64,000 bases of DNA, from positions 124,001 through 188,000 of the forward strand of contig JAHDYR010000017.1 of the NCBI GenBank assembly GCA_019828565.1, in the 5' to 3' direction. This DNA is from Carpediemonas membranifera BICM (lineage: Eukaryota; Protista; Fornicata). Of this stretch, positions 242 through 33,220 are shown piece by piece. The notes under the pieces were generated by a model. The model ran no database searches, was not told the origin of the DNA, and saw only the letters and a list, made by a program, of their open reading frames with translations. How positions within the stretch are numbered: position 1 is the stretch's first letter; every line of letters begins with the position of its first letter. The translations under genes and the position numbers were made by a program.

Positions 242-283
242 TGTGCTATGAAGGGTCAAACAATGTGTTTATACTGCGCAACA
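242..283 (+). repeat. left terminal hairpin unit of element 1 (42 bp)
   Basis: TGTGCTATGAAGGGTCAAACAATGTGTTTATACTGCGCAACA; central AAACA-atg-TGTTT stem; direct repeat of 1332-1371. Confidence 0.85.
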
Positions 284-478
284 CTGCCCTGTCTCCCTCC
301 TACTCACGTCTTAAGTCGGTAGGGAGATCGTCTTCTCCAGGGCTTCCACAAAGCGTCTTCTTCGTGGACGTCAGCACAGCTGCAAACATCACAATCGCTC
401 ACACGTCGTCTCATTGTCTTCTATTCCACATCCAATAATGCCGAGGCTCCGCCCGCGCCGGATCCTGATGCCCACCTC

Positions 479-1291
479 ATGGGGTTCGACCCGGGCGCGA
501 GGTCCATCGGAGGGTATTACATCAGGCACCCCGATGGCACCACCAGCTCCGGCGTCCTTCCAAAGTGCGGATACACTAAGACGCCAAGTTTCGGCTTTGA
601 TATGACGGCCGCGCCGTTCAAGAGCACAAGACTAGTGAGTATCAACAACTCTATTAGGTTTGTGCTGGACAACGCGAACGACATTTTCGAGGCTGGAATG
701 CGTAAGTCTTTCCGCCGAGTGCGCTTTGCGAACCACATCCTTCGCCAGAAGCACTTCGCCCGCTGCGGCCAACAGTTGGCTCGGGAGTTCGGTCGCCACC
801 ATCCCATCGCCACCCCCATTCGCCTGAAAGTCTTCTACGGGAGCTCGGGATTCACCACGCCTGCTGGTATGTTCATTCCTTGCGCGCCATATCGAAAGTT
901 CGCGAGAGAGATAGTACCCCTTCTCAAGGGGTATAACATTGTCGTCGATCTTAACATGGTTAACGAGGACCGCACCACCGTCGTCTGCCCTCACTGCCAC
1001 GCCCCCTACAAGCGAGTTCGTCCGCGTGATGACCAGCACGTTCACCCACATCGTGTGATGCTCTGCGAAAATCCACAGTGCCGTGGTGCTCAGTGGCGCG
1101 CAACAGTTCCTGATGCTCTGAATGTTGATCATCGGGACAAGAGTGCTGCAGAGAACATCCTGTGGCGTTCTCTTGCCACGGAAGATGAGCTCGGTGGCTC
1201 TCCATTCAGTCGCACCTCGATCCCGCGCCTTCCAACATCATTCCAGTATCATCAATTGGTTAACCGCCAACATTCATCTACGGACGGATGA
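479..1291 (+). CDS. Fanzor/TnpB-family RuvC nuclease, C-terminal half only (5'-truncated)
   Basis: RuvC-I GFDPG, RuvC-II VNEDRTT, Zn ribbon CPHC...CENPQC, RuvC-III HRDKSAAENI. Similarity to 12419-14143 extends upstream only to ~437 (NAEAPPAPD vs DAEATPAPD). In-frame stop at 320-322 with no upstream in-frame ATG. Confidence 0.88.
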   Translation: MGFDPGARSIGGYYIRHPDGTTSSGVLPKCGYTKTPSFGFDMTAAPFKSTRLVSINNSIRFVLDNANDIFEAGMRKSFRRVRFANHILRQKHFARCGQQLAREFGRHHPIATPIRLKVFYGSSGFTTPAGMFIPCAPYRKFAREIVPLLKGYNIVVDLNMVNEDRTTVVCPHCHAPYKRVRPRDDQHVHPHRVMLCENPQCRGAQWRATVPDALNVDHRDKSAAENILWRSLATEDELGGSPFSRTSIPRLPTSFQYHQLVNRQHSSTDG

Positions 1292-1331
1292 TGTTGTGCA
1301 GTTTGGCACTTTGATCGTTCCTTTCAGGCCC

Positions 1332-1371
1332 TGTCTGGGAGGTTCGAACAATGTGTTTATACTGCGCAACA
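1332..1371 (+). repeat. right terminal hairpin unit of element 1 (40 bp); candidate omegaRNA 3' end
   Basis: TGTCTGGGAGGTTCGAACAATGTGTTTATACTGCGCAACA, 40 nt after the Fanzor stop, followed by the TSD. Confidence 0.85.
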
Positions 1372-1379
1372 ACATCATC

Positions 1380-2589
1380 ATGCGCCTCGTAATCTGTGCA
1401 ATCTGCATCGCGGGTCTCGCTTTCGCAGCGGGTCTCGAAGACGCTCTTGTCTTTAACCCTTACTATTACATGTTCACGAATGCTGACCTGCTTCGTGACC
1501 ATATTAACAGCAAGGAGGCCGCTATTACTCACTGGAACGAGCACGGTGCTCGGGAATGCCGCAATGCTCACCCCACCTTCGACGTTGCGTCCTATTTCAA
1601 CATGAACCCCGACGTTGCCCGATCATGCAACAGACTGTGTGATTGCGGTGTGAGACATTTCATCACCAATGGCCACAGAGAGGGCAGACACACGTGGCAG
1701 CAGGGCAACAACGGGCGCTATACCATCTGGAATGCGGACAAGACTGTCACTGTGTCTACCGGCGGCCGTATGGCCGGTGCCATCGACTCCATCACCTACA
1801 AGGGCAGGGAGCTGCTCAACTCATACGACCATGGCAGAGAATGCCAGTACGCCATTACAGTCGGCTATGGCGAGTGCCTTAACCCTACCGAGGCTGGCAG
1901 CAGCAGCGACGGCCTTGCCGACACGACCACGAGCAAGCTCCTCGGCATCAGATGCGACGGCTCATCCCTCCAGACTACATCCCAGTCTGCTTTCTGTATG
2001 TTCCCAATCCCATCATTACACAGGGCTCCGTCCCGGCGAGCATGAGGCTCACCCCTCTGCTGCATGCACCGTCGCCCGGAACACCCAGGCGCTCTCGGAC
2101 TACAAGTTCTCCAAGAACGTGTTTACTGGGTACAAGGGCCATAACAACGTCATCGTCGTTGAAGGTCAGATCGACGTGCCACCTCATGCCGAGTTTGCCA
2201 ATCACTTCCTCCAGCTCGAAGCACCCACCCCCTACACCAACGGTGAACTGACCAGTTTCTACACCATCAATGTGCATACCGCCGCGATCGCCCCCTACAA
2301 GCCCAACCAGGGCGAGACTGGCACCACACCCACGATTGCCGCAACCCCTGATGGCAGTGCCGCGCTTTCCATCATCGCCCCTCAGTGCGGTCACGGTGTC
2401 GACCGCCACTTTGCCGCATGGTACTTCAACGAGGGCAGCGAGGCCGGTAACACGGGCAAGCTCGATGTTGTCTGCCGCTGGAACGATGCCAATGCTGGTG
2501 ACGTCTATCATACGACTGCCTATATCGTTGTGGGCACATTGGATGAGGTCCGCGGAACCATTCAGTCCATCGCATCCTGCTGCTTCTGA
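1380..2589 (+). CDS. secreted protein with two FD/FN-xx-YY...H...G-xx-E-x-R repeats and a bacterial-like DHGR/NPTEAG domain; intron 1996-2023
   Basis: Signal peptide MRLVICAICIAGLAFA. The 28-nt intron gtatgt...ttacacag joins ORFs 1122..2045 and 1669..2589 (F-W-L-R-P). Confidence 0.8.
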
Positions 2590-3818: not shown

Positions 3819-3871
3819 TTGTAAACTCAACTGTGATCGTCTGCTAACCGTACACTATTTTATAAACAAGC

Positions 3872-8270: not shown

Positions 8271-10085
8271 TTAATTGTAGCCCTCATCGGGGTTGTGACG
8301 CACTGGCGTCCGCACCCGTGTTGACCGGCGTGACGGGGTCAAGGGGGTCTCGACCTTGGCACGACGCTTCCGGCCGGGGGTCTTGGGCTGCTTCTGGATC
8401 TTCTCGCGCTCCTCCTTGAGGGCAGCCTGCAGGGCCTGGGCGCCGGCGTCCTCGGCGACCTCCTTCTGGTATGTGTCGACGATGCCCACAGCAGACTTGG
8501 GCACCTGCTTCGCGGCGGCGGCCAGGACAAAGGCGCCGCGCCTGGAGAGGAAGAACTCGGCGTTCTCGGCGTTGATGGCTCCGACAACGGCACCGGCAAA
8601 CACGGTGGCGTTGGAGCACTCGCGCTTGCAGAGGCGCTGCATGGTGCGGTGCTGCTTGTGCTCAGTGTGCTGGCTGGTCTCCACCCACTTCTCCGCCAGC
8701 TTGCAGACCGCATCACTGCCGGCCGAAGCCAGTGCGGAGCAGAGCAGGTTGCCGGTGGTGATGTCGAGCTTCTCGGGGTTCGCGGCGAAGTACTCGAAGA
8801 CGGCTGTGGCGATGGACTCGATCGCCACCACGGGTCCGGTAATGGCCTCTTTCTGGGCGGGGGTGGGCCATGTCATCGCCTCGACAGTATCAGCGCCCTC
8901 CACGAGCAAGCCGAGCATGCGGGGGCCGGTGGGCGACGCGAGGACGGCAGCAACGCCGTTGGCGACAATCGCCTCAGCCACGTCAGCTGCAAACTGGGCG
9001 GATCTGCTGGCGAGGGCCATCAGCAGCGGCTGGGTCTTGGCATCACCGGCGATTGCGGGGGCGGTCTCCTTCACCGAGGCGAGCAGAGCCTTGGCGGCGG
9101 CCGGGTCAGCGTGGATGGCGAGGGTGCAGAGCAGGTGGCCGGCCTCCTTGTGGGTCATGATGTCGGCGGGCTTGGCGCGCGCAAGGATGTTGTCGAGGAG
9201 GAAAGTCGAGAAGTCGGCAGACTTGGCCTCCGCGACGACGGTGGCGGTGAAGAGGGCGGGGAAGTTCACCAGGAAGAGGTGGCGCTCCGTGATCATCTTG
9301 CTAGCCTTGCGACGGAACTTCAGCAGCGCCTTGTCGCGGTCATCGGCCTCGTCGAGTACATCCGCCAGAGTCTTGTCCTCAGGGATGCCGGTCGCCTCTG
9401 CGAACAGCTTCTTCTGCTGCTCAGGGTTGGCAGCAGAATAGATCGTGGCGAAGATCGGGCCACCGAACTGGGATGAAGCGACGTGAGCGGCAGATCCGGC
9501 GATGACGGCGGTGATGGAATCGACGGCCTCTTCTGGTCCGTGGGCGGCAAGGTAGCAGTACTTGAAGAGATCGCGGGCCACAGCGCAGCCGTTCTTGTCG
9601 ACAGCGAGGTGGACAAAGTGGGGCGTGAAGATCTTGGACATGCGGGCAAGCTGGGTCTCGTTGCCGCGTTTCATCATCAGCTTGATCACCTGGCTAGCCT
9701 TCTCGCTCATGGCAGCGGAGACGAGCTCCTCCTTGCGCTTGCTGAGAATGTCAACGATCTTCTCCTGGAGATCCTCGGGGGCCTTCTTGGACTTGAGAGC
9801 TACAAAGACCTCAGGCTTGGTGATGTCGAGGTGGCGAAGATCAATCTCAGGGATCTTTCCCTTCTGGCTGCGAGCACGCTTTCCATCCTCTCTCTGGATG
9901 GCCATGGGCCGCTTAGTGCGTTCAGCATCAGGACGACGATCACCAGCGGGTCTCGGGCGACGTTCACCATCAAAACGCCTGTTCCCGGCAGGCTTTCTAT
10001 CGCGGTCACCGCCACGGGGTCCGTTTGACCTGGGACCGCGGGTGAATGACTTCCGATCTCTCTGTTCTCTCTGGAATTCAGCCAT
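8271..10085 (-). CDS. Pumilio/ARM-repeat nucleolar protein (Puf6/PUM3-like)
   Basis: Basic RG-rich N-terminus; PUF-like helical repeats (ASQVIKLMMKRG, LAVDKNGCAV, SQFGG); RGAFVL near the C-terminus. Confidence 0.6.
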   Translation of the reverse strand: MAEFQREQRDRKSFTRGPRSNGPRGGDRDRKPAGNRRFDGERRPRPAGDRRPDAERTKRPMAIQREDGKRARSQKGKIPEIDLRHLDITKPEVFVALKSKKAPEDLQEKIVDILSKRKEELVSAAMSEKASQVIKLMMKRGNETQLARMSKIFTPHFVHLAVDKNGCAVARDLFKYCYLAAHGPEEAVDSITAVIAGSAAHVASSQFGGPIFATIYSAANPEQQKKLFAEATGIPEDKTLADVLDEADDRDKALLKFRRKASKMITERHLFLVNFPALFTATVVAEAKSADFSTFLLDNILARAKPADIMTHKEAGHLLCTLAIHADPAAAKALLASVKETAPAIAGDAKTQPLLMALASRSAQFAADVAEAIVANGVAAVLASPTGPRMLGLLVEGADTVEAMTWPTPAQKEAITGPVVAIESIATAVFEYFAANPEKLDITTGNLLCSALASAGSDAVCKLAEKWVETSQHTEHKQHRTMQRLCKRECSNATVFAGAVVGAINAENAEFFLSRRGAFVLAAAAKQVPKSAVGIVDTYQKEVAEDAGAQALQAALKEEREKIQKQPKTPGRKRRAKVETPLTPSRRSTRVRTPVRHNPDEGYN

Positions 10086-10862
10086 CGGGACTTCGACGGG
10101 TAAACTGCGCGGGGCTTTAAACTGCGGTATGAGTTACTGAAGTCTGCTATAGACGATTGAGAGTCTGTTTTCTGCTTGCACTGTGCACTCTATGATACTT
10201 CATTACCCCAGGGTGCTTCAGTGCTTCAGTGGCCGAACGGTTGTGGACGGCGAGTAGTTCTCTGTGCTGCACCCGTGAGTGTTAGTGGGCTCGGCAAATC
10301 AGTGAGTCATTAAACTGCACCACCCTCTCCATCCATGGGAGCTGTAGTGACTTTCTTTGGTGCTTTCCAACAGGATGAGAAGCTAAAGGACAAGCTGAGT
10401 TTTATAATTGCGAGTTTTGCCTGACAATTTGACAGGCAGTCGACCCTGTGGTCGACTATGCTGGCGTACCATGCTTGTTGAACCATGCGTACGTCAAGCC
10501 TCCTGTAACACGATGTACGGGAGAGCGAAGCCAGCCTCTTCCGGGTCGACCCGAGCAAGTTCCCAATACAAGGTCCTGGGTGATGTACCGTGTAGGGTTT
10601 AATGAAAGCAACGAACTTCCGCAGTTTAGGGTCACAGTGACAAACATTCGTGCATTGCCACTCATCGCTCTGCTCAGATCGACCCTGTCATGTCATACCA
10701 CAGCTTCTCCCCGCACCATGAGGTGTTTATATGTGTCTATTTAAGCTATGTGTGGCTTCTGTCACGTGCGAGACCAGTCCCGTACCAGACAAACTAAAAC
10801 TGCGTGATTCCTCACATCCTTGTCGACATATGCAAGGCTAAGGCACTCACCGCATTTGCCCG

Positions 10863-12251
10863 CTATCCCGGTTTAATATACTGCTTTGCAGTCATCATCT
10901 CATCCTTTGGGAAAACAAACCTCACCGTATCCATACCAACATGCCACAACTCAAGAGTTGACTCCACCGAGCTATATATAGCCCTCATCATCGCATCACT
11001 GGGTCCAATCAAGAATCTCCGGAATATCTCTCTGACTGCAAAATCGCGATTAGCAAACAGAGCGAATCTGTTATCATATTCAATCCACTCGTTCAATGTC
11101 ATGTCGAGCTGCCCAGTGGCCAGGGCCATGACGCCCCAGTGACAAAGGGCCCGCCCGCTGACTGCCGGGAACACGTGAGTCTGCCTCAAATGCTCAATCA
11201 ATTGATTAAATAGATTACTGCTCATATCTGAAGATGCGATGACGTCAATCTGACGCAATAGCGCCTCCTTCGAATGAGTCGAGAGCTCAGCGGGGCAAGT
11301 GATGTCTCGAGTGACTGCCAGCACCTCGTCCCTCTGGAGTGGTGAGGCAAATGGGACAAAGCTGAGCGGAACCAAGCTCGACCCGGCGCTAAGGGCCAGT
11401 GGGATGCGGCTAGCGATGGACAGGGCGACGTCCCGGGCCTCATGAGGAGGGAGCTCTGGGATGACGTCGATCCAGGCCGTGTCGAGGTCGGTAAGATAAG
11501 AAGGGCCGCCATATGCTCCAATCAACGGCGTGAACGTGGCCTGGCATGGTGGGGGTTGCGGCAGCCTCACGGTGGGCTCCTCCAGCACGGGTTTGATCCC
11601 AATCAGCTCGGTCTGGGGGGCCAGGAAGGCCATGGCACGTGGAAGCATCGACAGCTGTCCGTCTATGGCAAACGCCTTGACTGCCCTCAGCCGGAGACAC
11701 AGCTCAGCCACCCTCGAGGCGGTGGAGGAGGCCGTCTTAGTCCGGGCGGGCAGGGTAACCGCGCCCACTCCCATGGCCCTTAGATGACGGGTCCACACGA
11801 GCGCCATAGCGCGTCTAAAGCAGTCTAGGGCAGCTGTGCCGAGGGGGAAGACTATGATCACGACAAGGGGGAGGGCCTGCCGGGTGGCGGCACGGAGGGC
11901 CACGGAAAGAAGACGAAGCGGAGGGACTTCATGCTTGGATATAATACACGCACAGACGTCTCGTGGCGTCGGTGTGACCGCAGTTATGGACGCTAGGCCA
12001 TTGGTGCAAGACTCGCCACGGCTGAGAGGCACATGACTGGTATCCGGCCGCAACGCTCGTCGGTGATGAACACATGCTGTTGGCTTTGGATGATTTGGTG
12101 GTTTCTTATCAATTTTCCTCATTACCCCGCCCGTGAAGGGATCAATAGACACTACCAGGTTGTCAACATCGAGAACTCCAGAGGTATTCGCGCAAACATC
12201 AGCAACATACTGTTCAATGCCCTCAATGAGAATGTCATGACCCAAAATCAT
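10863..12251 (-). CDS. hypothetical protein
   Basis: 462-aa ATG ORF, no recognisable motif; lies directly downstream of element 2. Confidence 0.55.
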   Translation of the reverse strand: MILGHDILIEGIEQYVADVCANTSGVLDVDNLVVSIDPFTGGVMRKIDKKPPNHPKPTACVHHRRALRPDTSHVPLSRGESCTNGLASITAVTPTPRDVCACIISKHEVPPLRLLSVALRAATRQALPLVVIIVFPLGTAALDCFRRAMALVWTRHLRAMGVGAVTLPARTKTASSTASRVAELCLRLRAVKAFAIDGQLSMLPRAMAFLAPQTELIGIKPVLEEPTVRLPQPPPCQATFTPLIGAYGGPSYLTDLDTAWIDVIPELPPHEARDVALSIASRIPLALSAGSSLVPLSFVPFASPLQRDEVLAVTRDITCPAELSTHSKEALLRQIDVIASSDMSSNLFNQLIEHLRQTHVFPAVSGRALCHWGVMALATGQLDMTLNEWIEYDNRFALFANRDFAVREIFRRFLIGPSDAMMRAIYSSVESTLELWHVGMDTVRFVFPKDEMMTAKQYIKPG

Positions 12252-12274
12252 GCTCTACAACTGCCGGCGCCGGC

Positions 12275-12418
12275 TGTGCTGCGCAGGATAAGAATACTTG
12301 AGTCCAAAACACACAGTGATCCGAGCAGCATCAGGATCGCAGTGTGGTTCATCATACTCTATCAATCGTGCGCTGCATATCACGCGCGCTGCAGCGCGTG
12401 CTTTCTCAACTTAGCAAG
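12275..12418 (-). ncRNA. candidate Fanzor omegaRNA scaffold (stop codon to right terminus)
   Basis: Non-coding 3' region with hairpins CACGCGC-tgca-GCGCGCGTG and CACAC..GATCC...GGATC..GTGTG, ending in the 41-bp terminal unit 12275-12315. Position matches known TnpB/Fanzor omegaRNA loci; expression is not shown. Confidence 0.5.
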
Positions 12419-14322: not shown

Positions 14323-14682
14323 CGGAGTCTATTGAGCTGCATGCATCGATCATTTCTTTTCGGGGTTCATCAGCTAGCAGCATCCCTCAAAACACAAGAA
14401 ACCAGCATCATACAACACAAAGCGTCTTTACTACTAGCTACAACCGCTTTCCACCACTAGTATCTCTCACAACAGACGAAGATGACGAAGACGACGACGA
14501 CATGAGCTTCAGACGCCTGCAATGGACGACAGATGAGCGCGTAACAGACGAGCACAGACGCGAAAGAAGACAGCAGCGTTCGACACAGACGATGGACGAC
14601 GCATCTTTTCGTGCAGATCGACGACTGAAAGCACGAAAGCCTGATGGTGCAGACGAGGGCTGAAGTGGGTGAGTGGAGGTAG

Positions 14683-22508: not shown

Positions 22509-23255
22509 TTACGTTGAGGTATTGTTCTGAGTGAGCGGGTAGTAGAGGCCGCAGTCCTCGACCTCGATGAACTCGGGGCACTGGGTGTCGGGGATGGGGC
22601 AGTCCTCGCAGGAGCCGGTGCAGATCACAAGGATGTCGCTGGTCTCAATCCAGGCGGGGCACTCGACGTTGAAGTTGTTGCAGCGGGAGCGGAGCTCGAA
22701 CATGTACTCGTAGCCGGAGAAGTCGAGGAGGTCGCCGGTGAGCAGGTTGCAGTCGAGGTGGATCTCCTTGACGAAGGTGAAGCTGGTGACGTAGCAGGCG
22801 GGGATCTCGCCCTCGAAGAGGTTGTGGCCGAGGTAGATGTACTGGAGGTACTCGTCGTTGCAGAGGGCGACGGGGAGGGGACCAGACAGGCGGTTGTTGT
22901 CGAGGTTGAGGTACTTGAGGTTGGTCAGGAAGCCGATGGCGTCGGGGACGGGGCCGGAGATCTCGTTCTCGTTGAGCTGGAGGCTCTTGAGGTAGGGGAA
23001 GCAGCCGATGTCGCTGGTGAGCTCGCCGGTGAGGTTGTTGGCCGGGAGTCTGATGTCGGTGACGTAGCCGTCGAGGTTGCAGCCGATGCCATACCAGGTG
23101 CAGACGTCACCAGTGTTCCAGCCGGAGTTGTCGGTCCAGAAATCGCCACCGAGGGCAGTGTACAGGTTCATGAGGGCCTCCTGCTCCGAGATAACGCATT
23201 GAGCGAACACGGTGGCGATCAGGCCAAGGACTACGAGAGAAGTGCCGAACTTCAT
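22509..23255 (-). CDS. cyst wall protein (Giardia CWP-like LRR + Cys-rich), copy 1
   Basis: Signal peptide, LRRNT (L..LY....G..W....W....CTW.GI.C), IGCFPYLKSL, KEIHLDCNLLTG, Cys-rich tail DCGLYY; C-terminus LTQNNTST. Confidence 0.88.
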   Translation of the reverse strand: MKFGTSLVVLGLIATVFAQCVISEQEALMNLYTALGGDFWTDNSGWNTGDVCTWYGIGCNLDGYVTDIRLPANNLTGELTSDIGCFPYLKSLQLNENEISGPVPDAIGFLTNLKYLNLDNNRLSGPLPVALCNDEYLQYIYLGHNLFEGEIPACYVTSFTFVKEIHLDCNLLTGDLLDFSGYEYMFELRSRCNNFNVECPAWIETSDILVICTGSCEDCPIPDTQCPEFIEVEDCGLYYPLTQNNTST

Positions 23256-23266
23256 TGTTGTGTGAG

Positions 23267-23272
23267 CTGTAG
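23267..23272 (-). promoter_or_regulatory. CTACAG Myb-type site 12-17 nt upstream of the CWP ATG (present in every unit)
   Basis: Minus strand gcCTACAGctcacacaacaATG; matches the C(T/A)ACAG site bound by Giardia Myb2 in cwp promoters. Confidence 0.5.
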
Positions 23273-23461
23273 GCTTATCGTGTCATCGCGCGCTGACACG
23301 TTACAGTTCTCAGAAATGATTGGACCCGCCGATCAGATTCCGGGGCACCGTGCTGCCCCCACGCGCCCACGGATGCCGTCCCGGCGCCTTTCTCAGCCGC
23401 AAGGTAAACAGCTTCAGTCAACCCGCGATGCATCATTCAGTCACTCAATCATTTACCAAGC

Positions 23462-24202
23462 TTAGGCGGGGACAGCCTCAATAGGGTAGTAGAGGCCGCA
23501 GTCCTCGACCTCGATGAACTCGGGGCACTGGGTGTCGGGGATGGGGCAGTCCTCGCAGGAGCCGGTGCAGATCACAAGGATGTCGCTGGTCTCAATCCAG
23601 GCGGGGCACTCGACGTTGAAGTTGTTGCAGCGGGAGCGGAGCTCGAACATGTACTCGTAGCCGGAGAAGTCGAGGAGGTCGCCGGTGAGCAGGTTGCAGT
23701 CGAGGTGGATCTCCTTGACAAAGGTGAAGCTGGTGACGTAGCAGGCGGGGATCTCGCCCTCGAAGAGGTTGTGGCCGAGGTAGATGTACTGGAGGTACTC
23801 GTCGTTGCAGAGGGCGACGGGGAGGGGACCAGACAGGCGGTTGTTGTCGAGGTTGAGGTACTTGAGGTTGGTCAGGAAGCCGATAGCGTCGGGGACGGGG
23901 CCGGAGATCTCGTTCTCGTTGAGCTGGAGGCTCTTGAGGTAGGGGAAGCAGCCGATGTCGCTGGTGAGCTCGCCGGTGAGGTTGTTGGCCGGGAGTCTGA
24001 TGTCGGTGACGTAGCCGTCGAGGTTGCAGCCGATGCCATACCAGGTGCAGACGTCACCAGTGTTCCAGCCGGAGTTGTCGGTCCAGAAATCGCCACCGAG
24101 GGCAGTGTACAGGTTCATGAGGGCCTCCTGCTCCGAGATAACGCATTGAGCGAACACGGTGGCGATCAGGCCAAGGACTACGAGAGAAGTGCCGAACTTC
24201 AT
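23462..24202 (-). CDS. cyst wall protein copy 2
   Basis: As copy 1; C-terminus IEAVPA. Confidence 0.88.
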   Translation of the reverse strand: MKFGTSLVVLGLIATVFAQCVISEQEALMNLYTALGGDFWTDNSGWNTGDVCTWYGIGCNLDGYVTDIRLPANNLTGELTSDIGCFPYLKSLQLNENEISGPVPDAIGFLTNLKYLNLDNNRLSGPLPVALCNDEYLQYIYLGHNLFEGEIPACYVTSFTFVKEIHLDCNLLTGDLLDFSGYEYMFELRSRCNNFNVECPAWIETSDILVICTGSCEDCPIPDTQCPEFIEVEDCGLYYPIEAVPA

Positions 24203-24409
24203 TGTTGTGTGAGCTGTAGGCTTATCGTGTCATCGCGCGCTGACACGTTACAGTTCTCAGAAATGATTGGACCCGCCGATCAGATTCCGGGGCACCGTGC
24301 TGCCCCCCACGCGCCCACGGATGCCGTCCCGGCGCCTTTCTCAGCCCCAAGGTAAACAGCTTCAGTCAACCCGCGATGCATCATTCAGTCACTCAATCAT
24401 TTACCAAGC

Positions 24410-25150
24410 TTAGGCGGGGACAGCCTCAATAGGGTAGTAGAGGCCGCAGTCCTCGACCTCGATGAACTCGGGGCACTGGGTGTCGGGGATGGGGCAGTCC
24501 TCGCAGGAGCCGGTGCAGATCACAAGGATGTCGCTGGTCTCAATCCAGGCGGGGCACTCGACGTTGAAGTTGTTGCAGCGGGAGCGGAGCTCGAACATGT
24601 ACTCGTAGCCGGAGAAGTCGAGGAGGTCGCCGGTGAGCAGGTTGCAGTCGAGGTGGATCTCCTTGACAAAGGTGAAGCTGGTGACGTAGCAGGCGGGGAT
24701 CTCGCCCTCGAAGAGGTTGTGGCCGAGGTAGATGTACTGGAGGTACTCGTCGTTGCAGAGGGCGACGGGGAGGGGACCAGACAGGCGGTTGTTGTCGAGG
24801 TTGAGGTACTTGAGGTTGGTCAGGAAGCCGATGGCGTCGGGGACGGGGCCGGAGATCTCGTTCTCGTTGAGCTGGAGGCTCTTGAGGTAGGGGAAGCAGC
24901 CGATGTCGCTGGTGAGCTCGCCGGTGAGGTTGTTGGCCGGGAGTCTGATGTCGGTGACGTAGCCGTCGAGGTTGCAGCCGATGCCATACCAGGTGCAGAC
25001 GTCACCAGTGTTCCAGCCGGAGTTGTCGGTCCAGAAATCGCCACCGAGGGCAGTGTACAGGTTCATGAGGGCCTCCTGCTCCGAGATAACGCATTGAGCG
25101 AACACGGTGGCGATCAGGCCAAGGACTACGAGAGAAGTGCCGAACTTCAT
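24410..25150 (-). CDS. cyst wall protein copy 3
   Basis: As copy 2. Confidence 0.88.
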   Translation of the reverse strand: MKFGTSLVVLGLIATVFAQCVISEQEALMNLYTALGGDFWTDNSGWNTGDVCTWYGIGCNLDGYVTDIRLPANNLTGELTSDIGCFPYLKSLQLNENEISGPVPDAIGFLTNLKYLNLDNNRLSGPLPVALCNDEYLQYIYLGHNLFEGEIPACYVTSFTFVKEIHLDCNLLTGDLLDFSGYEYMFELRSRCNNFNVECPAWIETSDILVICTGSCEDCPIPDTQCPEFIEVEDCGLYYPIEAVPA

Positions 25151-25356
25151 TGTTGTGTGAGCTGTAGGCTTATCGTGTCATCGCGCGCTGACACGTTACA
25201 GTTCTCAGAAATGATTGGACCCGCCGATCAGATTCCGGGGCACCGTGCTGCCCCCACGCGCCCACGGATGCCGTCCCGGCGCCTTTCTCAGCCGCAAGGT
25301 AAACAGCTTCAGTCAACCCGCGATGCATCATTCAGTCACTCAATCATTTACCAAGC

Positions 25357-26097
25357 TTAGGCGGGGACAGCCTCAATAGGGTAGTAGAGGCCGCAGTCCT
25401 CGACCTCGATGAACTCGGGGCACTGGGTGTCGGGGATGGGGCAGTCCTCGCAGGAGCCGGTGCAGATCACAAGGATGTCGCTGGTCTCAATCCAGGCGGG
25501 GCACTCGACGTTGAAGTTGTTGCAGCGGGAGCGGAGCTCGAACATGTACTCGTAGCCGGAGAAGTCGAGGAGGTCGCCGGTGAGCAGGTTGCAGTCGAGG
25601 TGGATCTCCTTGACGAAGGTGAAGCTGGTGACGTAGCAGGCGGGGATCTCGCCCTCGAAGAGGTTGTGGCCGAGGTAGATGTACTGGAGGTACTCGTCGT
25701 TGCAGAGGGCGACGGGGAGGGGACCAGACAGGCGGTTGTTGTCGAGGTTGAGGTACTTGAGGTTGGTCAGGAAGCCGATGGCGTCGGGGACGGGGCCGGA
25801 GATCTCGTTCTCGTTGAGCTGGAGGCTCTTGAGGTAGGGGAAGCAGCCGATGTCGCTGGTGAGCTCGCCGGTGAGGTTGTTGGCCGGGAGTCTGATGTCG
25901 GTGACGTAGCCGTCGAGGTTGCAGCCGATGCCATACCAGGTGCAGACGTCACCAGTGTTCCAGCCGGAGTTGTCGGTCCAGAAATCGCCACCGAGGGCAG
26001 TGTACAGGTTCATGAGGGCCTCCTGCTCCGAGATAACGCATTGAGCGAACACGGTGGCGATCAGGCCAAGGACTACGAGAGAAGTGCCGAACTTCAT
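25357..26097 (-). CDS. cyst wall protein copy 4
   Basis: As copy 2. Confidence 0.88.
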   Translation of the reverse strand: MKFGTSLVVLGLIATVFAQCVISEQEALMNLYTALGGDFWTDNSGWNTGDVCTWYGIGCNLDGYVTDIRLPANNLTGELTSDIGCFPYLKSLQLNENEISGPVPDAIGFLTNLKYLNLDNNRLSGPLPVALCNDEYLQYIYLGHNLFEGEIPACYVTSFTFVKEIHLDCNLLTGDLLDFSGYEYMFELRSRCNNFNVECPAWIETSDILVICTGSCEDCPIPDTQCPEFIEVEDCGLYYPIEAVPA

Positions 26098-26304
26098 TGT
26101 TGTGTGAGCTGTAGGCTTATCGTGTCATCGCGCGCTGACACGTTACAGTTCTCAGAAATGATTGGACCCGCCGATCAGATTCCGGGGCACCGTGCTGCCC
26201 CCCACGCGCCCACGGATGCCGTCCCGGCGCCTTTCTCAGCCGCAAGGTAAACAGCTTCAGTCAACCCGCGATGCATCATTCAGTCACTCAATCATTTACC
26301 AAGC

Positions 26305-27049
26305 TTAGTTGACGGGGACAGCCTCAAGAGGGTAGTAGAGGCCGCAGTCCTCGACCTCGATGAACTCGGGGCACTGGGTGTCGGGGATGGGGCAGTCCTC
26401 GCAGGAGCCGGTGCAGATCACAAGGATGTCGCTGGTCTCAATCCAGGCGGGGCACTCGACGTTGAAGTTGTTGCAGCGGGAGCGGAGCTCGAACATGTAC
26501 TCGTAGCCGGAGAAGTCGAGGAGGTCGCCGGTGAGCAGGTTGCAGTCGAGGTGGATCTCCTTGACGAAGGTGAAGCTGGTGACGTAGCAGGCGGGGATCT
26601 CGCCCTCGAAGAGGTTGTGGCCGAGGTAGATGTACTGGAGGTACTCGTCGTTGCAGAGGGCGACGGGGAGGGGACCAGACAGGCGGTTGTTGTCGAGGTT
26701 GAGGTACTTGAGGTTGGTCAGGAAGCCGATGGCGTCGGGGACGGGGCCGGAGATCTCGTTCTCGTTGAGCTGGAGGCTCTTGAGGTAGGGGAAGCAGCCG
26801 ATGTCGCTGGTGAGCTCGCCGGTGAGGTTGTTGGCCGGGGAGTCTGATGTCGGTGACGTAGCCGTCGAGGTTGCAGCCGATGCCATACCAGGTGCAGACG
26901 TCACCAGTGTTCCAGCCGGAGTTGTCGGTCCAGAAATCGCCACCGAGGGCAGTGTACAGGTTCATGAGGGCCTCCTGCTCCGAGATAACGCATTGAGCGA
27001 ACACGGTGGCGATCAGGCCAAGGACTACGAGAGAAGTGCCGAACTTCAT
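26305..27049 (-). CDS. cyst wall protein copy 5 (+1 G at 26837-26840, probable sequencing error)
   Basis: Homopolymer frameshift; C-terminus LEAVPVN. Confidence 0.8.
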
Positions 27050-27255
27050 TGTTGTGTGAGCTGTAGGCTTATCGTGTCATCGCGCGCTGACACGTTACAG
27101 TTCTCAGAAATGATTGGACCCGCCGATCAGATTCCGGGGCACCGTGCTGCCCCCACGCGCCCACGGATGCCGTCCCGGCGCCTTTCTCAGCCGCAAGGTA
27201 AACAGCTTCAGTCAACCCGCGATGCATCATTCAGTCACTCAATCATTTACCAAGC

Positions 27256-27996
27256 TTAGTTGGGGACAGCCTCAATAGGGTAGTAGAGGCCGCAGTCCTC
27301 GACCTCGATGAACTCGGGGCACTGGGTGTCGGGGATGGGGCAGTCCTCGCAGGAGCCGGTGCAGATCACAAGGATGTCGCTGGTCTCAATCCAGGCGGGG
27401 CACTCGACGTTGAAGTTGTTGCAGCGGGAGCGGAGCTCGAACATGTACTCGTAGCCGGAGAAGTCGAGGAGGTCGCCGGTGAGCAGGTTGCAGTCGAGGT
27501 GGATCTCCTTGACGAAGGTGAAGCTGGTGACGTAGCAGGCGGGGATCTCGCCCTCGAAGAGGTTGTGGCCGAGGTAGATGTACTGGAGGTACTCGTCGTT
27601 GCAGAGGGCGACGGGGAGGGGACCAGACAGGCGGTTGTTGTCGAGGTTGAGGTACTTGAGGTTGGTCAGGAAGCCGATGGCGTCGGGGACGGGGCCGGAG
27701 ATCTCGTTCTCGTTGAGCTGGAGGCTCTTGAGGTAGGGGAAGCAGCCGATGTCGCTGGTGAGCTCGCCGGTGAGGTTGTTGGCCGGGAGTCTGATGTCGG
27801 TGACGTAGCCGTCGAGGTTGCAGCCGATGCCATACCAGGTGCAGACGTCACCAGTGTTCCAGCCGGAGTTGTCGGTCCAGAAATCGCCACCGAGGGCAGT
27901 GTACAGGTTCATGAGGGCCTCCTGCTCCGAGATAACGCATTGAGCGAACACGGTGGCGATCAGGCCAAGGACTACGAGAGAAGTGCCGAACTTCAT
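27256..27996 (-). CDS. cyst wall protein copy 6
   Basis: C-terminus IEAVPN. Confidence 0.88.
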   Translation of the reverse strand: MKFGTSLVVLGLIATVFAQCVISEQEALMNLYTALGGDFWTDNSGWNTGDVCTWYGIGCNLDGYVTDIRLPANNLTGELTSDIGCFPYLKSLQLNENEISGPVPDAIGFLTNLKYLNLDNNRLSGPLPVALCNDEYLQYIYLGHNLFEGEIPACYVTSFTFVKEIHLDCNLLTGDLLDFSGYEYMFELRSRCNNFNVECPAWIETSDILVICTGSCEDCPIPDTQCPEFIEVEDCGLYYPIEAVPN

Positions 27997-28203
27997 TGTT
28001 GTGTGAGCTGTAGGCTTTATCGTGTCATCGCGCGCTGACACGTTACAGTTCTCAGAAATGATTGGACCCGCCGATCAGATTCCGGGGCACCGTGCTGCCC
28101 CCACGCGCCCACGGATGCCGTCCCGGCGCCTTTCTCAGCCGCAAGGTAAACAGCTTCAGTCAACCCGCGATGCATCATTCAGTCACTCAATCATTTACCA
28201 AGC

Positions 28204-28945
28204 TTAGGCGGGGACAGCCTCAATAGGGTAGTAGAGGCCGCAGTCCTCGACCTCGATGAACTCGGGGCACTGGGTGTCGGGGATGGGGCAGTCCTCGCAG
28301 GAGCCGGTGCAGATCACAAGGATGTCGCTGGTCTCAATCCAGGCGGGGCACTCGACGTTGAAGTTGTTGCAGCGGGAGCGGAGCTCGAACATGTACTCGT
28401 AGCCGGAGAAGTCGAGGAGGTCGCCGGTGAGCAGGTTGCAGTCGAGGTGGATCTCCTTGACAAAGGTGAAGCTGGTGACGTAGCAGGCGGGGATCTCGCC
28501 CCTCGAAGAGGTTGTGGCCGAGGTAGATGTACTGGAGGTACTCGTCGTTGCAGAGGGCGACGGGGAGGGGACCAGACAGGCGGTTGTTGTCGAGGTTGAG
28601 GTACTTGAGGTTGGTCAGGAAGCCGATGGCGTCGGGGACGGGGCCGGAGATCTCGTTCTCGTTGAGCTGGAGGCTCTTGAGGTAGGGGAAGCAGCCGATG
28701 TCGCTGGTGAGCTCGCCGGTGAGGTTGTTGGCCGGGAGTCTGATGTCGGTGACGTAGCCGTCGAGGTTGCAGCCGATGCCATACCAGGTGCAGACGTCAC
28801 CAGTGTTCCAGCCGGAGTTGTCGGTCCAGAAATCGCCACCGAGGGCAGTGTACAGGTTCATGAGGGCCTCCTGCTCCGAGATAACGCATTGAGCGAACAC
28901 GGTGGCGATCAGGCCAAGGACTACGAGAGAAGTGCCGAACTTCAT
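28204..28945 (-). CDS. cyst wall protein copy 7 (+1 C at 28499-28502, probable error)
   Basis: Homopolymer frameshift. Confidence 0.8.
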
Positions 28946-29152
28946 TGTTGTGTGAGCTGTAGGCTTATCGTGTCATCGCGCGCTGACACGTTACAGTTCT
29001 CAGAAATGATTGGACCCGCCGATCAGATTCCGGGGCACCGTGCTGCCCCCCACGCGCCCACGGATGCCGTCCCGGCGCCTTTCTCAGCCGCAAGGTAAAC
29101 AGCTTCAGTCAACCCGCGATGCATCATTCAGTCACTCAATCATTTACCAAGC

Positions 29153-29887
29153 TTAGGGGATTTCAATAGGGTAGTAGAGGCCGCAGTCCTCGACCTCGAT
29201 GAACTCGGGGCACTGGGTGTCGGGGATGGGGCAGTCCTCGCAGGAGCCGGTGCAGATCACAAGGATGTCGCTGGTCTCAATCCAGGCGGGGCACTCGACG
29301 TTGAAGTTGTTGCAGCGGGAGCGGAGCTCGAACATGTACTCGTAGCCGGAGAAGTCGAGGAGGTCGCCGGTGAGCAGGTTGCAGTCGAGGTGGATCTCCT
29401 TGACAAAGGTGAAGCTGGTGACGTAGCAGGCGGGGATCTCGCCCTCGAAGAGGTTGTGGCCGAGGTAGATGTACTGGAGGTACTCGTCGTTGCAGAGGGC
29501 GACGGGGAGGGGACCAGACAGGCGGTTGTTGTCGAGGTTGAGGTACTTGAGGTTGGTCAGGAAGCCGATGGCGTCGGGGACGGGGCCGGAGATCTCGTTC
29601 TCGTTGAGCTGGAGGCTCTTGAGGTAGGGGAAGCAGCCGATGTCGCTGGTGAGCTCGCCGGTGAGGTTGTTGGCCGGGAGTCTGATGTCGGTGACGTAGC
29701 CGTCGAGGTTGCAGCCGATGCCATACCAGGTGCAGACGTCACCAGTGTTCCAGCCGGAGTTGTCGGTCCAGAAATCGCCACCGAGGGCAGTGTACAGGTT
29801 CATGAGGGCCTCCTGCTCCGAGATAACGCATTGAGCGAACACGGTGGCGATCAGGCCAAGGACTACGAGAGAAGTGCCGAACTTCAT
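29153..29887 (-). CDS. cyst wall protein copy 8
   Basis: C-terminus IEIP. Confidence 0.88.
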   Translation of the reverse strand: MKFGTSLVVLGLIATVFAQCVISEQEALMNLYTALGGDFWTDNSGWNTGDVCTWYGIGCNLDGYVTDIRLPANNLTGELTSDIGCFPYLKSLQLNENEISGPVPDAIGFLTNLKYLNLDNNRLSGPLPVALCNDEYLQYIYLGHNLFEGEIPACYVTSFTFVKEIHLDCNLLTGDLLDFSGYEYMFELRSRCNNFNVECPAWIETSDILVICTGSCEDCPIPDTQCPEFIEVEDCGLYYPIEIP

Positions 29888-30094
29888 TGTTGTGTGAGCT
29901 GTAGGCTTATCGTGTCATCGCGCGCTGACATGTTACAGTTCTCAGGAATGATTGGACCCGCCGATCAGATTCCGGGGCACCGTGCTGCCCCCCACGCGCC
30001 CACGGATGCCGTCCCGGCGCCTTTCTCAGCCGCAAGGTAAACAGCTTCAGTCAACCCGCGATGCATCATTCAGTCACTCAATCATTTACCAAGC

Positions 30095-30836
30095 TTAGGC
30101 GGGGACAGCCTCAATAGGGTAGTAGAGGCCGCAGTCCTCGACCTCGATGAACTCGGGGCACTGGGTGTCGGGGATGGGGCAGTCCTCGCAGGAGCCGGTG
30201 CAGATCACAAGGATGTCGCTGGTCTCAATCCAGGCGGGGCACTCGACGTTGAAGTTGTTGCAGCGGGAGCGGAGCTCGAACATGTACTCGTAGCCGGAGA
30301 AGTCGAGGAGGTCGCCGGTGAGCAGGTTGCAGTCGAGGTGGATCTCCTTGACGAAGGTGAAGCTGGTGACGTAGCAGGCGGGGATCTCGCCCTCGAAGAG
30401 GTTGTGGCCGAGGTAGATGTACTGGAGGTACTCGTCGTTGCAGAGGGCGACGGGGAGGGGACCAGACAGGCGGTTGTTGTCGAGGTTGAGGTACTTGAGG
30501 TTGGTCAGGAAGCCGATAGCGTCGGGGACGGGGCCGGAGATCTCGTTCTCGTTGAGCTGGAGGCTCTTGAGGTAGGGGGAAGCAGCCGATGTCGCTGGTG
30601 AGCTCGCCGGTGAGGTTGTTGGCCGGGAGTCTGATGTCGGTGACGTAGCCGTCGAGGTTGCAGCCGATGCCATACCAGGTGCAGACGTCACCAGTGTTCC
30701 AGCCGGAGTTGTCGGTCCAGAAATCGCCACCGAGGGCAGTGTACAGGTTCATGAGGGCCTCCTGCTCCGAGATAACGCATTGAGCGAACACGGTGGCGAT
30801 CAGGCCAAGGACTACGAGAGAAGTGCCGAACTTCAT
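30095..30836 (-). CDS. cyst wall protein copy 9 (+1 G at 30575-30579, probable error)
   Basis: Homopolymer frameshift. Confidence 0.8.
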
Positions 30837-31044
30837 TGTTGTGTGAGCTGTAGGCTTTATCGTGTCATCGCGCGCTGACACGTTACAGTTCTCAGAAATG
30901 ATTGGACCCGCCGATCAGATTCCGGGGCACCGTGCTGCCCCCCACGCGCCCACGGATGCCGTCCCGGCGCCTTTCTCAGCCGCAAGGTAAACAGCTTCAG
31001 TCAACCCGCGATGCATCATTCAGTCACTCAATCATTTACCAAGC

Positions 31045-31785
31045 TTAGGCGGGGACAGCCTCAATAGGGTAGTAGAGGCCGCAGTCCTCGACCTCGATGA
31101 ACTCGGGGCACTGGGTGTCGGGGATGGGGCAGTCCTCGCAGGAGCCGGTGCAGATCACAAGGATGTCGCTGGTCTCAATCCAGGCGGGGCACTCGACGTT
31201 GAAGTTGTTGCAGCGGGAGCGGAGCTCGAACATGTACTCGTAGCCGGAGAAGTCGAGGAGGTCGCCGGTGAGCAGGTTGCAGTCGAGGTGGATCTCCTTG
31301 ACAAAGGTGAAGCTGGTGACGTAGCAGGCGGGGATCTCGCCCTCGAAGAGGTTGTGGCCGAGGTAGATGTACTGGAGGTACTCGTCGTTGCAGAGGGCGA
31401 CGGGGAGGGGACCAGACAGGCGGTTGTTGTCGAGGTTGAGGTACTTGAGGTTGGTCAGGAAGCCGATGGCGTCGGGGACGGGGCCGGAGATCTCGTTCTC
31501 GTTGAGCTGGAGGCTCTTGAGGTAGGGGAAGCAGCCGATGTCGCTGGTGAGCTCGCCGGTGAGGTTGTTGGCCGGGAGTCTGATGTCGGTGACGTAGCCG
31601 TCGAGGTTGCAGCCGATGCCATACCAGGTGCAGACGTCACCAGTGTTCCAGCCGGAGTTGTCGGTCCAGAAATCGCCACCGAGGGCAGTGTACAGGTTCA
31701 TGAGGGCCTCCTGCTCCGAGATAACGCATTGAGCGAACACGGTGGCGATCAGGCCAAGGACTACGAGAGAAGTGCCGAACTTCAT
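31045..31785 (-). CDS. cyst wall protein copy 10
   Basis: As copy 2. Confidence 0.88.
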   Translation of the reverse strand: MKFGTSLVVLGLIATVFAQCVISEQEALMNLYTALGGDFWTDNSGWNTGDVCTWYGIGCNLDGYVTDIRLPANNLTGELTSDIGCFPYLKSLQLNENEISGPVPDAIGFLTNLKYLNLDNNRLSGPLPVALCNDEYLQYIYLGHNLFEGEIPACYVTSFTFVKEIHLDCNLLTGDLLDFSGYEYMFELRSRCNNFNVECPAWIETSDILVICTGSCEDCPIPDTQCPEFIEVEDCGLYYPIEAVPA

Positions 31786-31992
31786 TGTTGTGTGAGCTGT
31801 AGGCTTATCGTGTCATCGCGCGCTGACACGTTACAGTTCTCAGAAATGATTGGACCCGCCGATCAGATTCCGGGGCACCGTGCTGCCCCCCACGCGCCCA
31901 CGGATGCCGTCCCGGCGCCTTTCTCAGCCACAAGGTAAACAGCTTCAGTCAACCCGCGATGCATCATTCAGTCACTCAATCATTTACCAAGC

Positions 31993-32114
31993 TTAGGCGG
32001 GGACAGCCTCAATAGGGTAGTAGAGGCCGCAGTCCTCGACCTCGATGAACTCGGGGCACTGGGTGTCGGGGATGGGGCAGTCCTCGCAGGAGCTGGTGCA
32101 GATCACTAGGATGT
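31993..32114 (-). pseudogene. 3' fragment of cyst wall protein (array edge)
   Basis: Last ~40 codons only, with two substitutions; similarity stops at 32114. Confidence 0.85.
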
Positions 32115-32179
32115 ATCGAGAAGCAAAGCTGTGAAAAGCAACGGGACAACAAGACCCATAAATGACCACCTTTATGAAA

Positions 32180-32884
32180 CTACGGCAGTGCCGCAAGCAG
32201 ACCTCGCGGCGGTGGCCGGCCCGAGTGTCTCCGGCCATGGCGAGACACTGTTGACACGAAGTAGCAGGCAGACCCAAGCCGCAGTGTCGAGGCAGCAATC
32301 ACCTCAGTAGTGTCTACCCTAGGATGGGTGGCTATGACTGCTGCCGGCTGGTCGGGGCCTGCTGCGGTCACTTCAAGAGAGACGTTGTTGCTGGAGTCAC
32401 GTTTGAAGCTGAAATGGGCTGGGATTGCCTTCCCATCAGCGAGAGCGAATCCAGTGGCAGTGAGTATCATCTGGGGCTTGACTGTATCGGCCTTGGACGA
32501 GTCAGTCTCCTTAAACTGCGGCTGGAAGACAAAGTCTATAGCGTCATCTTCGGGACCAAGGTCCACCAGAGAGTCGACCTCCAGGCGAACCGACCCGGTT
32601 GCGCTGCCCTCGATGACCCCGATGGCTGTGGTAACACCAGCTGCCGAGGCAGAGGCTGAGAACGGGCCTGTGTGCGCCGTATGGTCCTGAAAGGAGAAGT
32701 CCTGCTGGAAGAAATCGTTGGTAGAGGACCCACTTGGCGGATTGATAGCGCATTGGGCAGCGTTTGGGCACTGGGCGCATGACGTAGCACATGCGGCAAT
32801 AGTACTGGCACCTGAGGGAATAAACGACGATGCTATGTTAAGTGATAGGTCTTTTGCAATTGATGTGACGAGTTCTCTGCTCAT
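32180..32884 (-). CDS. hypothetical protein with a short Cys-rich segment
   Basis: 234-aa ATG ORF, CATSCAQCPNAAQC. Confidence 0.5.
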   Translation of the reverse strand: MSRELVTSIAKDLSLNIASSFIPSGASTIAACATSCAQCPNAAQCAINPPSGSSTNDFFQQDFSFQDHTAHTGPFSASASAAGVTTAIGVIEGSATGSVRLEVDSLVDLGPEDDAIDFVFQPQFKETDSSKADTVKPQMILTATGFALADGKAIPAHFSFKRDSSNNVSLEVTAAGPDQPAAVIATHPRVDTTEVIAASTLRLGSACYFVSTVSRHGRRHSGRPPPRGLLAALP

Positions 32885-32949
32885 TGGGGCTCAGGAGGCT
32901 CACATTCGCACACACGTTCGCTCAATACGCGAGTTAAGAACTGGCCTAA

Positions 32950-33220
32950 TGTGGTATTTTTTAGAGGGTTTATGGGCTCAATTTATCTCACGTAAACAGC
33001 TGGCTCAGGCCGACAGCTCAACTGGAAGTAGCTCCAGTGGACTGAACAGTCCCAGCTTGACACTCCACTTGTCATACACATTTATGTGGAGGATTCATGT
33101 AAAGGTGACTTAAGCTGTCGACCCCCCTGGGATGAACTCCAGAGGACTGAACAGGTTCAGTCTGACGGCCCACCTGTCGTACACAGTTTAGACTCAACAA
33201 TTCTAATCCTGCGCAGCACA
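32950..33220 (+). mobile_element. gene-less mini-element (left-terminal-unit type of element 2), 5-bp TSD CCTAA
   Basis: CCTAA at 32945-32949 and 33221-33225; TGTGGT...AGCACA termini. Homologous to 14683-14842 plus an extra 112-bp module (32975-33086) bounded by TTTATG. Confidence 0.92.

Follow-up and report, generated by a model that had tools for sequence, protein, structure and literature searches.

Which kind of mobile element carries Fanzor nucleases in the protist Carpediemonas membranifera, and how does such an element find its place in the genome? The question is raised by a stretch of 64,000 nucleotides of strain BICM (contig JAHDYR010000017.1, positions 124,001 to 188,000; hereafter the window) from assembly GCA_019828565.1, which comprises 24.2 Mb in 69 contigs. 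We know of no RNA-guided nucleases in eukaryotes other than Fanzors, whose natural role has so far been inferred from bacterial TnpB. Three insertions, here called elements 1 to 3, are found in the window. Elements 2 and 3 belong to one family (family A) and element 1 to a sister family (family B), and a Fanzor1-type nuclease is the sole gene of these families. It appears that they are non-autonomous DNA transposons moved in trans by a predicted integrase-like DDE enzyme, a reading to which we assign a probability of about 0.6. Their insertion is family-specific, oriented and at a fixed offset behind a short motif, in many cases before host genes. This placement by a promoter-like motif, at one distance and in one orientation, is the most unusual feature of the elements and was not part of the original prediction made from the window. 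The features concerned are as follows.

221-230, plus strand: degenerate target motif GCATTTTTGC, 11 nt upstream of element 1 (motif, 6 nt and the 5-bp target site duplication, TSD, which is the genome-wide offset of family B)
237-241: left TSD of element 1, ACATC (right copy at 1372-1376)
242-1371, plus strand: element 1, family B Fanzor element, a 1130-bp internal-deletion derivative
242-283, plus strand: family B left terminal unit, 42 bp, its last 25 nt common to the right unit
479-1291, plus strand: truncated Fanzor open reading frame (ORF), 270 aa, with RuvC-I GFDPG, zinc finger and RuvC-III HRD
1290-1371, plus strand: right end of family B, made up of a degenerate unit in inverted orientation and the right unit (1332-1371), together an 82-nt hairpin
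1380-2045, plus strand: host ORF, ATG 8 nt past the right end of element 1, same orientation, no Pfam match
10863-12251, minus strand: host ORF, 462 aa, ATG (12251) 23 nt past the right end of element 2, same orientation
12270-12274: TSD of element 2, CCGGC (other copy at 14843-14847)
12275-14842, minus strand: element 2, family A Fanzor element, 2568 bp
12275-12315, minus strand: family A right terminal unit, 41 bp, ending in ...CCTGCGCAGCACA
12316-12418, minus strand: 3′ untranslated region (UTR), expected site of the omega-RNA scaffold, with the lowest variability in the element
12419-14143, minus strand: Fanzor1-like ORF, 574 aa, with RuvC D-E-D triad and zinc finger
14140-14322, minus strand: Fanzor N-terminal extension, out of frame in this copy (compare P0002)
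14683-14716, minus strand: repeat, in direct orientation and within the left arm, of the right end's last 34 nt (29/34 identical)
14717-14828, minus strand: left-arm stretch of about 112 bp, including the conserved 104-nt module
14829-14842, minus strand: family A left terminus TGTGGTATTTAGAG, 14 nt, 73 in the genome
14853-14862, minus strand: target motif GCAGTCTATG of element 2, 10 nt upstream of its left end
32929-32938, plus strand: motif-like GCGAGTTAAG, 11 nt upstream of element 3
32945-32949: TSD of element 3, CCTAA (other copy at 33221-33225)
32950-33220, plus strand: element 3, derived from family A, 271 bp, lacking an ORF
59701-59742, plus strand: isolated unit of the family B right type, no TSD, probably truncated

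Read in the orientation of the Fanzor ORF, which for element 2 is the minus strand, all three elements start with TGTG and finish with CTGCGCA(A/G)CA(CA), and each is flanked by a perfect 5-bp TSD (ACATC around 242-1371, CCGGC around 12275-14842, and CCTAA around 32950-33220). These ends and duplications, as originally described, were confirmed by sequence reading, and further copies were checked for both. A perfect 5-bp TSD together with the left terminus TGTGGTATTTAGAG is present in 14 of the 27 family A copies that have a recognisable right end, all 14 duplications differ from one another (p about 1e-35), and the right end is sharp in about 25 of the 30 family A loci that were fetched. For family B, a TSD was found in all three readable cases, which are element 1 and two solo units of 40-43 bp with duplications of their own (GACTC in L012 and GTTGA in L014). 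The 5-bp target shows no sequence preference. The terminal 19-mer of family A occurs 237 times in the genome and the terminal 22-mer of family B 239 times, with 0 occurrences of the reversed controls, and at least 86 matches to the family A protein were detected. TG...CA ends combined with a 5-bp TSD are a signature of integrase-like DDE enzymes, as the original prediction had stated, and it is from this signature, which may be compared with that of the Ginger/TDD elements, that an enzyme of this type is suggested to act on the ends (PMC2836005). The elements themselves encode no transposase, also in line with the prediction, since none of their ORFs other than the Fanzor-like one matched any family.

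Upstream of the left TSD, the target motif GCAGTTTAWG (10-13 bp) is found in the same register in nearly every family A copy. Positions -22 to -11, with the consensus GTGCAGTTTAWG, account for all the information content, and the duplicated 5 bp contribute none. Motif, 10 nt and the family A left terminus (at most 3 mismatches) follow one another at 51 sites, out of 73 left termini in all, while motif, 11 nt and the family B left terminus do so at 96 sites genome-wide and about five genuine family B sites have the 10-nt spacing; the control was 0 in each search. The opposite orientation (right end, 10 nt and inverted motif) was found at 0 sites in the genome, with a control of 0. The two families also differ in the preferred variant of the motif, with 27 TATG and 10 TAAG in family A and about 7 TATG and 40 TAAG in family B (Fisher p 1e-7), according to a hand count of unique sites among the family A matches with 10-nt and the family B matches with 11-nt spacing. 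About 150 insertions thus occupy single-nucleotide-precise sites behind the motif and before host genes. The sister families differ by 1 nt in offset and in the motif variant, and the identity of the motif reader is a testable puzzle. When a weight matrix of the motif was applied to the elements, the right end and its internal copy, each read as its reverse complement, gave the best matches inside both families, and no sense-strand match was present upstream of the Fanzor ORF in either family. At C14:72292-72333, a motif-like stretch of an inverted unit is followed after 10 nt by a family A left end.

The motif is not confined to insertion sites. In the window it has 22 matches against 4.3 expected, a five-fold excess (e.g., 46891-46900, 36976-36985, and 10116-10125), and it stands 12-55 nt before the ATGs of the uninterrupted genes 8271-10085, 17649-18941, 36998-37789, and 46946-47704. 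An ORF of at least 100 aa follows within 70 nt in 9 of 25 strong matches, compared with 17% of random positions (p 0.02). Likewise, in 13 of 27 family A copies a same-orientation ATG no more than 30 nt past the right end opens an ORF of at least 100 aa, compared with 8% at random (p 6e-8). By-products of the analysis are therefore a core-promoter candidate in Carpediemonas and the finding that many genes of this organism carry a transposon between promoter and start codon; no description of Carpediemonas promoters or of the GCAGTTTAWG motif was found in a literature search. It was also considered that the motif might be the polyadenylation signal of the upstream gene. At element 2, the poly(T) run of an RNA contig ends at about 15000, where the minus-strand ORF 15081-15827 accordingly has its poly(A) site, with a 3′ UTR of about 80 nt; this site lies about 140 nt before the motif, which is therefore not a 3′ signal of that gene, and the candidate was rejected. 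Assembled contigs of two runs of polyadenylated RNA match the elements, deleted copies among them, with an identity of at least 97%; they span the 5′ region, some of the ORF and the 3′ region, and contig joints such as that from 12763 to 14541 correspond to other deleted copies. Elements acting as introns spliced from the host 5′ leader were rejected as well: about half of the family A right ends have CGG, not CAG, before CACA, and family B is without AG.

Movement in trans, which had been proposed from the window, is borne out by family B. The statement that two of the elements carry a Fanzor holds in that both have a Fanzor ORF, but that of element 1, when aligned to P0022, a full-length protein of family B, covers no more than its C-terminal (RuvC) half. 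The 1130-bp deletion form of element 1 has five further full-length copies, with 92-99% identity to it, and is present in at least three loci with different flanks. A form that lacks the N-terminal half of the Fanzor and sits at several loci has therefore moved repeatedly in trans; Fanzor-deficient derivatives have transposed, and the moving enzyme acts in trans.

The internal structure of the ends departs in part from what had been described. The inverted similarity of the two ends of elements 1 and 2 extends over about 15 nt at most and needs a gap. Units of about 41 bp in direct orientation at both ends, as originally claimed, are present in element 1, in which the last 25 nt of the 40-bp right unit (1332-1371) are identical to those of the left unit; in element 2, the left unit is split, and about 112 bp (14717-14828) part the 14-nt terminus from the 34-nt repeat. 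The first 12 nt of left and right units are consistently different, and on sequence reading the left terminus looks like an inverted right end minus 4-7 nt. The units had also been taken for imperfect palindromes, each a hairpin. The 41-bp units fold no better as DNA than shuffled sequences (z +0.1 to +0.9), and this proposal was rejected. A strong hairpin is formed only by the last 82 nt of family B (1290-1371), with z of -5.0 as RNA and -5.4 as DNA against shuffles. Head-to-head pairs of the family B 22-mer, 52 nt apart, were observed at G000:C7:221998-222071 and C7:288279-288352; these palindromic mini-elements of about 74 bp resemble the 82-nt hairpin.

In family A, left arms range in length from 41 bp to over 300 bp among copies, and the right end is constant. 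Most copies have a longer left arm than element 2, the usual length being 160-330 bp, and the compact 41-bp left unit is found in a few copies only, e.g., L011 and L024. A 104-nt module directly after the left terminus (33081-33184 in the window) shows 99-100% identity in about 30 copies, compared with differences of 4-5% in family A element sequence outside it; it gave no fold signal on either strand and no Rfam match in searches of the window and of element 3. Element 3 is made up of the left terminus, two copies of this module and the right end. Some other arrangements were observed in family A. The left terminus is doubled in one copy (L024:1273-1345), with two TGTGGTATTTAGA starts 32 nt apart, and TTTAGAG-like motifs recur in the left arms at the L024 and L027 loci. 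In L027, a family A element has entered a family B element right at its beginning, and both stand behind the same motif. A tandem triplication of an element plus its flank is represented by three family A left ends (G000:C8:930979, 933060, and 935139), which are identical in motif and TSD flank and spaced 2081 bp apart. One insertion site, recognised by an identical 20-nt flank, occurs three times (G000:C4:650151, C4:667016, and C8:827850) with elements of about 2467, 1746, and 355 bp, which look like segmental duplicates with internal deletions made in place.

With regard to the protein, close relatives are limited to hypothetical proteins of C. membranifera in a homologous-protein search. 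Pfam assigned no family to the 574-aa ORF and gave only a weak Cas12f1-like_TNB match for the 270-aa ORF, and phmmer with a single protein against PDB returned nothing relevant. Using a profile of families A, B, and C (family C being a further Carpediemonas family), distant matches outside Carpediemonas were obtained that carry PF07282 (Cas12f1-like TNB) above the Pfam cut-off. The profile for structure matching (alignment A3, comprising families A, B, and C and the distant matches) matched solved Fanzor1 proteins with E values of 2e-17 (Guillardia GtFz1), 5e-15 (Parasitella PpFz1) and 1e-14 (Spizellomyces SpuFz1), compared with 2.5e-7 for Mimivirus Fanzor2, 2e-4 for Cas12f and 2.5 for TnpB. 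These profile matches show the predicted proteins to be of the Fanzor1 type and uphold their original placement in the TnpB/Fanzor family. The RuvC D-E-D triad (GFDPG, SEFRTS, HRDK) and, between RuvC-II and RuvC-III, a zinc finger of the form CPxC...CxNPxC are conserved across families A, B, and C, the identity of which is just 44-50%. The family A copy in the window has a Cys to Arg change in the first CxxC of the zinc finger and a frameshifted N-terminal extension, and open frames of 630-644 aa are seen in other copies of the family. Among 18 near-full family A copies, nucleotide diversity (pi) of the ORF is 0.040, with 0.033, 0.040, and 0.048 at the three codon positions, and this near absence of a codon-position bias is consistent with neutral decay following insertion. 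In the same copies, variability is lowest in the 3′ UTR (pi 0.021 vs. 0.040 in the ORF), as expected if it encodes an omega-RNA scaffold.

Two readings had been offered for the origin of these elements, a micro-LTR element and a composite of two miniature inverted-repeat transposable elements (MITEs). According to the former, they would be non-autonomous long terminal repeat (LTR) retrotransposons, similar to large retrotransposon derivatives (LARD) or terminal-repeat retrotransposons in miniature (TRIM), copied via RNA, with resident LTR retrotransposons supplying the reverse transcriptase and integrase for their insertion. LARD/TRIM elements and solo LTRs share with them TG...CA ends, direct terminal repeats, a 5-bp TSD, and solo units. 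Resident LTR retrotransposons are abundant, with at least 150 rve matches in the genome and open frames of up to about 1550 aa. One family has 80-nt LTRs with the tips TGTGGCGTTT...CGGCACA, a polypurine tract and an apparently 4-bp TSD, and another has 129-nt LTRs with the tips TGTCAGCG...CGAACA and a polypurine tract, the tracts of the two families being GAGGAGGGGCAGGA and GGGAGGGAAG. With two families of such very short LTRs, tiny TG...CA LTRs are normal in this genome, and the Fanzor ends resemble them; in addition, the left and right repeats of a copy mostly agree in the A/G variant located 6 nt from the tip. However, all six complete elements of the family with 129-nt LTRs have LTR pairs that agree in their variants, whereas the repeats of the Fanzor elements are not regenerated identical: the left repeat is TTTAGACT in 18 of 19 family A copies, the right repeat is TTTGGACT in 24 of 25, and in the lineage of L001, L002, L025, and L027 four further left/right differences are kept at four different loci. 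Fixed differences of this kind are inherited across copies, which therefore argues for transposition at the DNA level. No polypurine tract precedes the right unit of the Fanzor elements, although both LTR families have one, and a primer-binding site of the TGG type is lacking after the left repeat. The left arm, unlike the right end, varies in length, the target motif is absent before both tested LTR families, and no retrotransposon is known to encode a Fanzor according to a 2026 review (PMC13565253). A retrotransposon origin thus appears unlikely.

The composite reading, in which a Fanzor gene came to be flanked by two direct MITE copies of 41-43 bp whose outer ends are now used, concerns origin only and is compatible with DNA transposition in trans. 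It may be entertained tentatively, given the solo units with their own TSDs, the presence of about 240 terminal units per family, far above two per Fanzor copy, and the likeness of the left terminus to an inverted right end with a 4-7-nt deletion; yet recombination between the direct repeats of one element would equally yield solo units, the usual left arm of family A, at 160-330 bp, is no compact unit, and the first 12 nt of the right unit are consistently unlike the left. A different possibility is that the Fanzor ribonucleoprotein (RNP), or an RNA made from the ends of the element, reads the motif and steers insertion, either as target selector for an integrase-type transposase or as maker of a staggered break for joining. 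That the specificity differs by family, with regard to the offset as well as to the motif variant, suggests a determinant encoded by the element, whose sole gene is Fanzor. Strictly oriented insertion at a fixed distance, the resemblance of the inverted right end to the motif and the family A left end at C14:72292-72333 also speak for it, and Tn7 has TGT...ACA ends and a 5-bp TSD. On the other hand, derivatives without functional Fanzor transpose (though they could be served in trans by the Fanzor of other copies), the match of any element sequence to the motif is too poor for a guide, and the catalytic triad is intact, which that of Cas12k is not. Furthermore, the conserved target is 10-13 bp long with insertion 2-6 bp away, compared with a much greater distance in guide-RNA-directed transposition. 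We consider such Fanzor-dependent targeting improbable, and hold the same low expectation of the broader proposal that the Fanzor RNP or another family-specific product reads the motif and places an integrase-type complex 10-11 bp downstream in one orientation. If true, Fanzor-directed placement would be a eukaryotic counterpart of Tn7-like CRISPR-associated transposons, which use a TnpB descendant for targeting, and an element-encoded reader of the motif would amount to a natural programmable or site-specific insertion system in eukaryotes. Selection has also to be weighed: in a gene-dense genome, insertions into coding sequence would be purged, and random insertions might survive only in the short 5′ leader regions. 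This is very hard to reconcile with the data, as selection cannot yield single-nucleotide precision (10 nt in family A, 11 nt in family B, 0 sites in the opposite orientation) and leaves the family-specific motif variant unexplained.

Under the preferred reading of DNA transposition in trans, the mover would be a DDE transposase of the retroviral-integrase type that acts on DNA without LTR-type reverse transcription. Targeting may proceed by tethering to the motif, the reader of which could be a host promoter-binding factor or a family-specific element-encoded component; the families differ in offset and preferred motif variant, and both inverted right ends resemble the motif. If the motif is a core-promoter element, insertion just behind it would lead to transcription of the Fanzor gene from the host promoter, a gene that lacks a sense-strand motif of its own. 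Fanzor, together with an omega-RNA from the conserved 3′ region, presumably maintains the element, as in other Fanzor/TnpB elements.

Several points weigh against this reading or parts of it. An autonomous DDE partner with the same ends, as envisaged originally, was not found: among the coordinates listed, no pair of family A termini is more than 2.6 kb apart, and no rve match lies between family A or B units. The motif precedes 0 of 13 and 0 of 23 copies in the two tested families of resident LTR retrotransposons; since these are never preceded by it and one apparently has a 4-bp TSD, their integrases are poor candidates as movers, and LTR families of the L044 and L033 types as sharers of the target site found no support. 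That the motif is a core-promoter element, TATA- or initiator-like, is inferred from its position. The RNA contigs represent transcription of element parts and, being assembled, cannot place the ends or starts of transcripts. The candidate omega-RNA is without fold support, as the 3′ region of family A folds no better than shuffles, and without an Rfam match in the window or in element 3. A classical target-adjacent motif (TAM) directly next to the left end is not evident, because the 10-11 nt at that place (5-bp TSD and spacer) are variable. The AlphaFold model of the protein is poor (mean predicted local distance difference test, pLDDT, 54.6), and its top Foldseek matches were Cas12f and SpuFz, with a template modelling (TM) score of about 0.24. 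Base-by-base reading covered 30 family A loci, 14 integrase loci and the window, and the statistics of family B are pattern counts. One pair of family A ends in inverted orientation, 6.3 kb apart (C5:286265-292605), was observed in addition and may represent two diverging elements or one longer element.

Fanzors have been reported in a variety of carriers, including Mariner, IS4-like, Sola2, MuDR, Harbinger, hAT, EnSpm, piggyBac, Helitron, Crypton, and IS607EU (PMC3627910, PMC13565253). DDE transposons with Fanzor1, e.g., SPu-1 of Spizellomyces, are similar to the elements described here in that they have a single Fanzor1-type ORF, are often non-autonomous with TSDs, and are expected to have a 3′ omega-RNA. 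However, TG...CA ends combined with a 5-bp TSD of variable sequence, terminal repeats in direct orientation, and fixed-offset insertion by a promoter-like motif are each absent from the listed hosts. The combination of TG...CA ends, a 5-bp TSD and such oriented insertion has not been described for a Fanzor host, and the original impression of an arrangement unlike described Fanzor loci agrees with its absence from the known hosts in the 2026 review (PMC13565253). The protein falls in the known Fanzor1 family, while the carrier fits no described superfamily fully. Its setting is new for a Fanzor, namely a compact metamonad genome with dozens of little-diverged copies (pi about 0.04), many of them with an uninterrupted ORF, and an integrase-type insertion signature; no paper covering both Carpediemonas and Fanzor was found in a literature search.

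Among other systems, Ginger1, Ginger2/TDD-4 and TDD-5 show similar, LTR-like termini of the TGT type, and TDD-4 and TDD-5 make 5-bp TSDs (PMC2836005). Ginger elements differ in having terminal inverted repeats of 40-270 bp, an integrase-like transposase of their own, and the targets CCGG or RTATAY, compared with an inverted similarity of about 15 nt at most, a target motif 10-11 nt away and no transposase found in the Carpediemonas elements. The Ginger terminus TGTNR is matched by family A (TGTGG, with a 5-bp TSD), while family B (TGTGC) departs from it at the fifth base. In comparison with LARD/TRIM elements, the absence of a polypurine tract and primer-binding site and the variable left arm set the Carpediemonas elements apart. 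Oriented or fixed-distance insertion by a bound factor or a recognised site is shared with Ty3, Tf1, Tn7 and CRISPR-associated Tn7-like elements, but the Carpediemonas elements lack TnsB/TnsC/TniQ-like genes and retrotransposon machinery, and their site is a short promoter-like motif just 5-6 bp away from the duplicated target. The IS200/IS605 and IS607 hosts of TnpB also combine a TnpB-family nuclease with end structures repeated on the same strand; in contrast to the variable 5-bp TSD and non-hairpin units seen here, they make no TSD and have a fixed target of 4-5 nt.

Some further features were noted among the resident LTR retrotransposons and in the window. Resident LTR retrotransposons (L044:4921-9630 and L033/L043; G000:C1:1383921-1388630, among others) have TGT...ACA tips, and in one family the Gag-Pol ATG abuts the 5′ LTR directly. 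Copies of the 129-nt-LTR family are more than 99% identical and were probably active recently. In the window, a tandem array of about 10 genes for leucine-rich-repeat proteins of 203-248 aa, with a period of about 950 bp, occupies positions 22509-31785 on the minus strand and coincides with a strong GC skew. Downstream of element 3, a gene for a Sir2-family deacetylase is located at positions 33796-34956.

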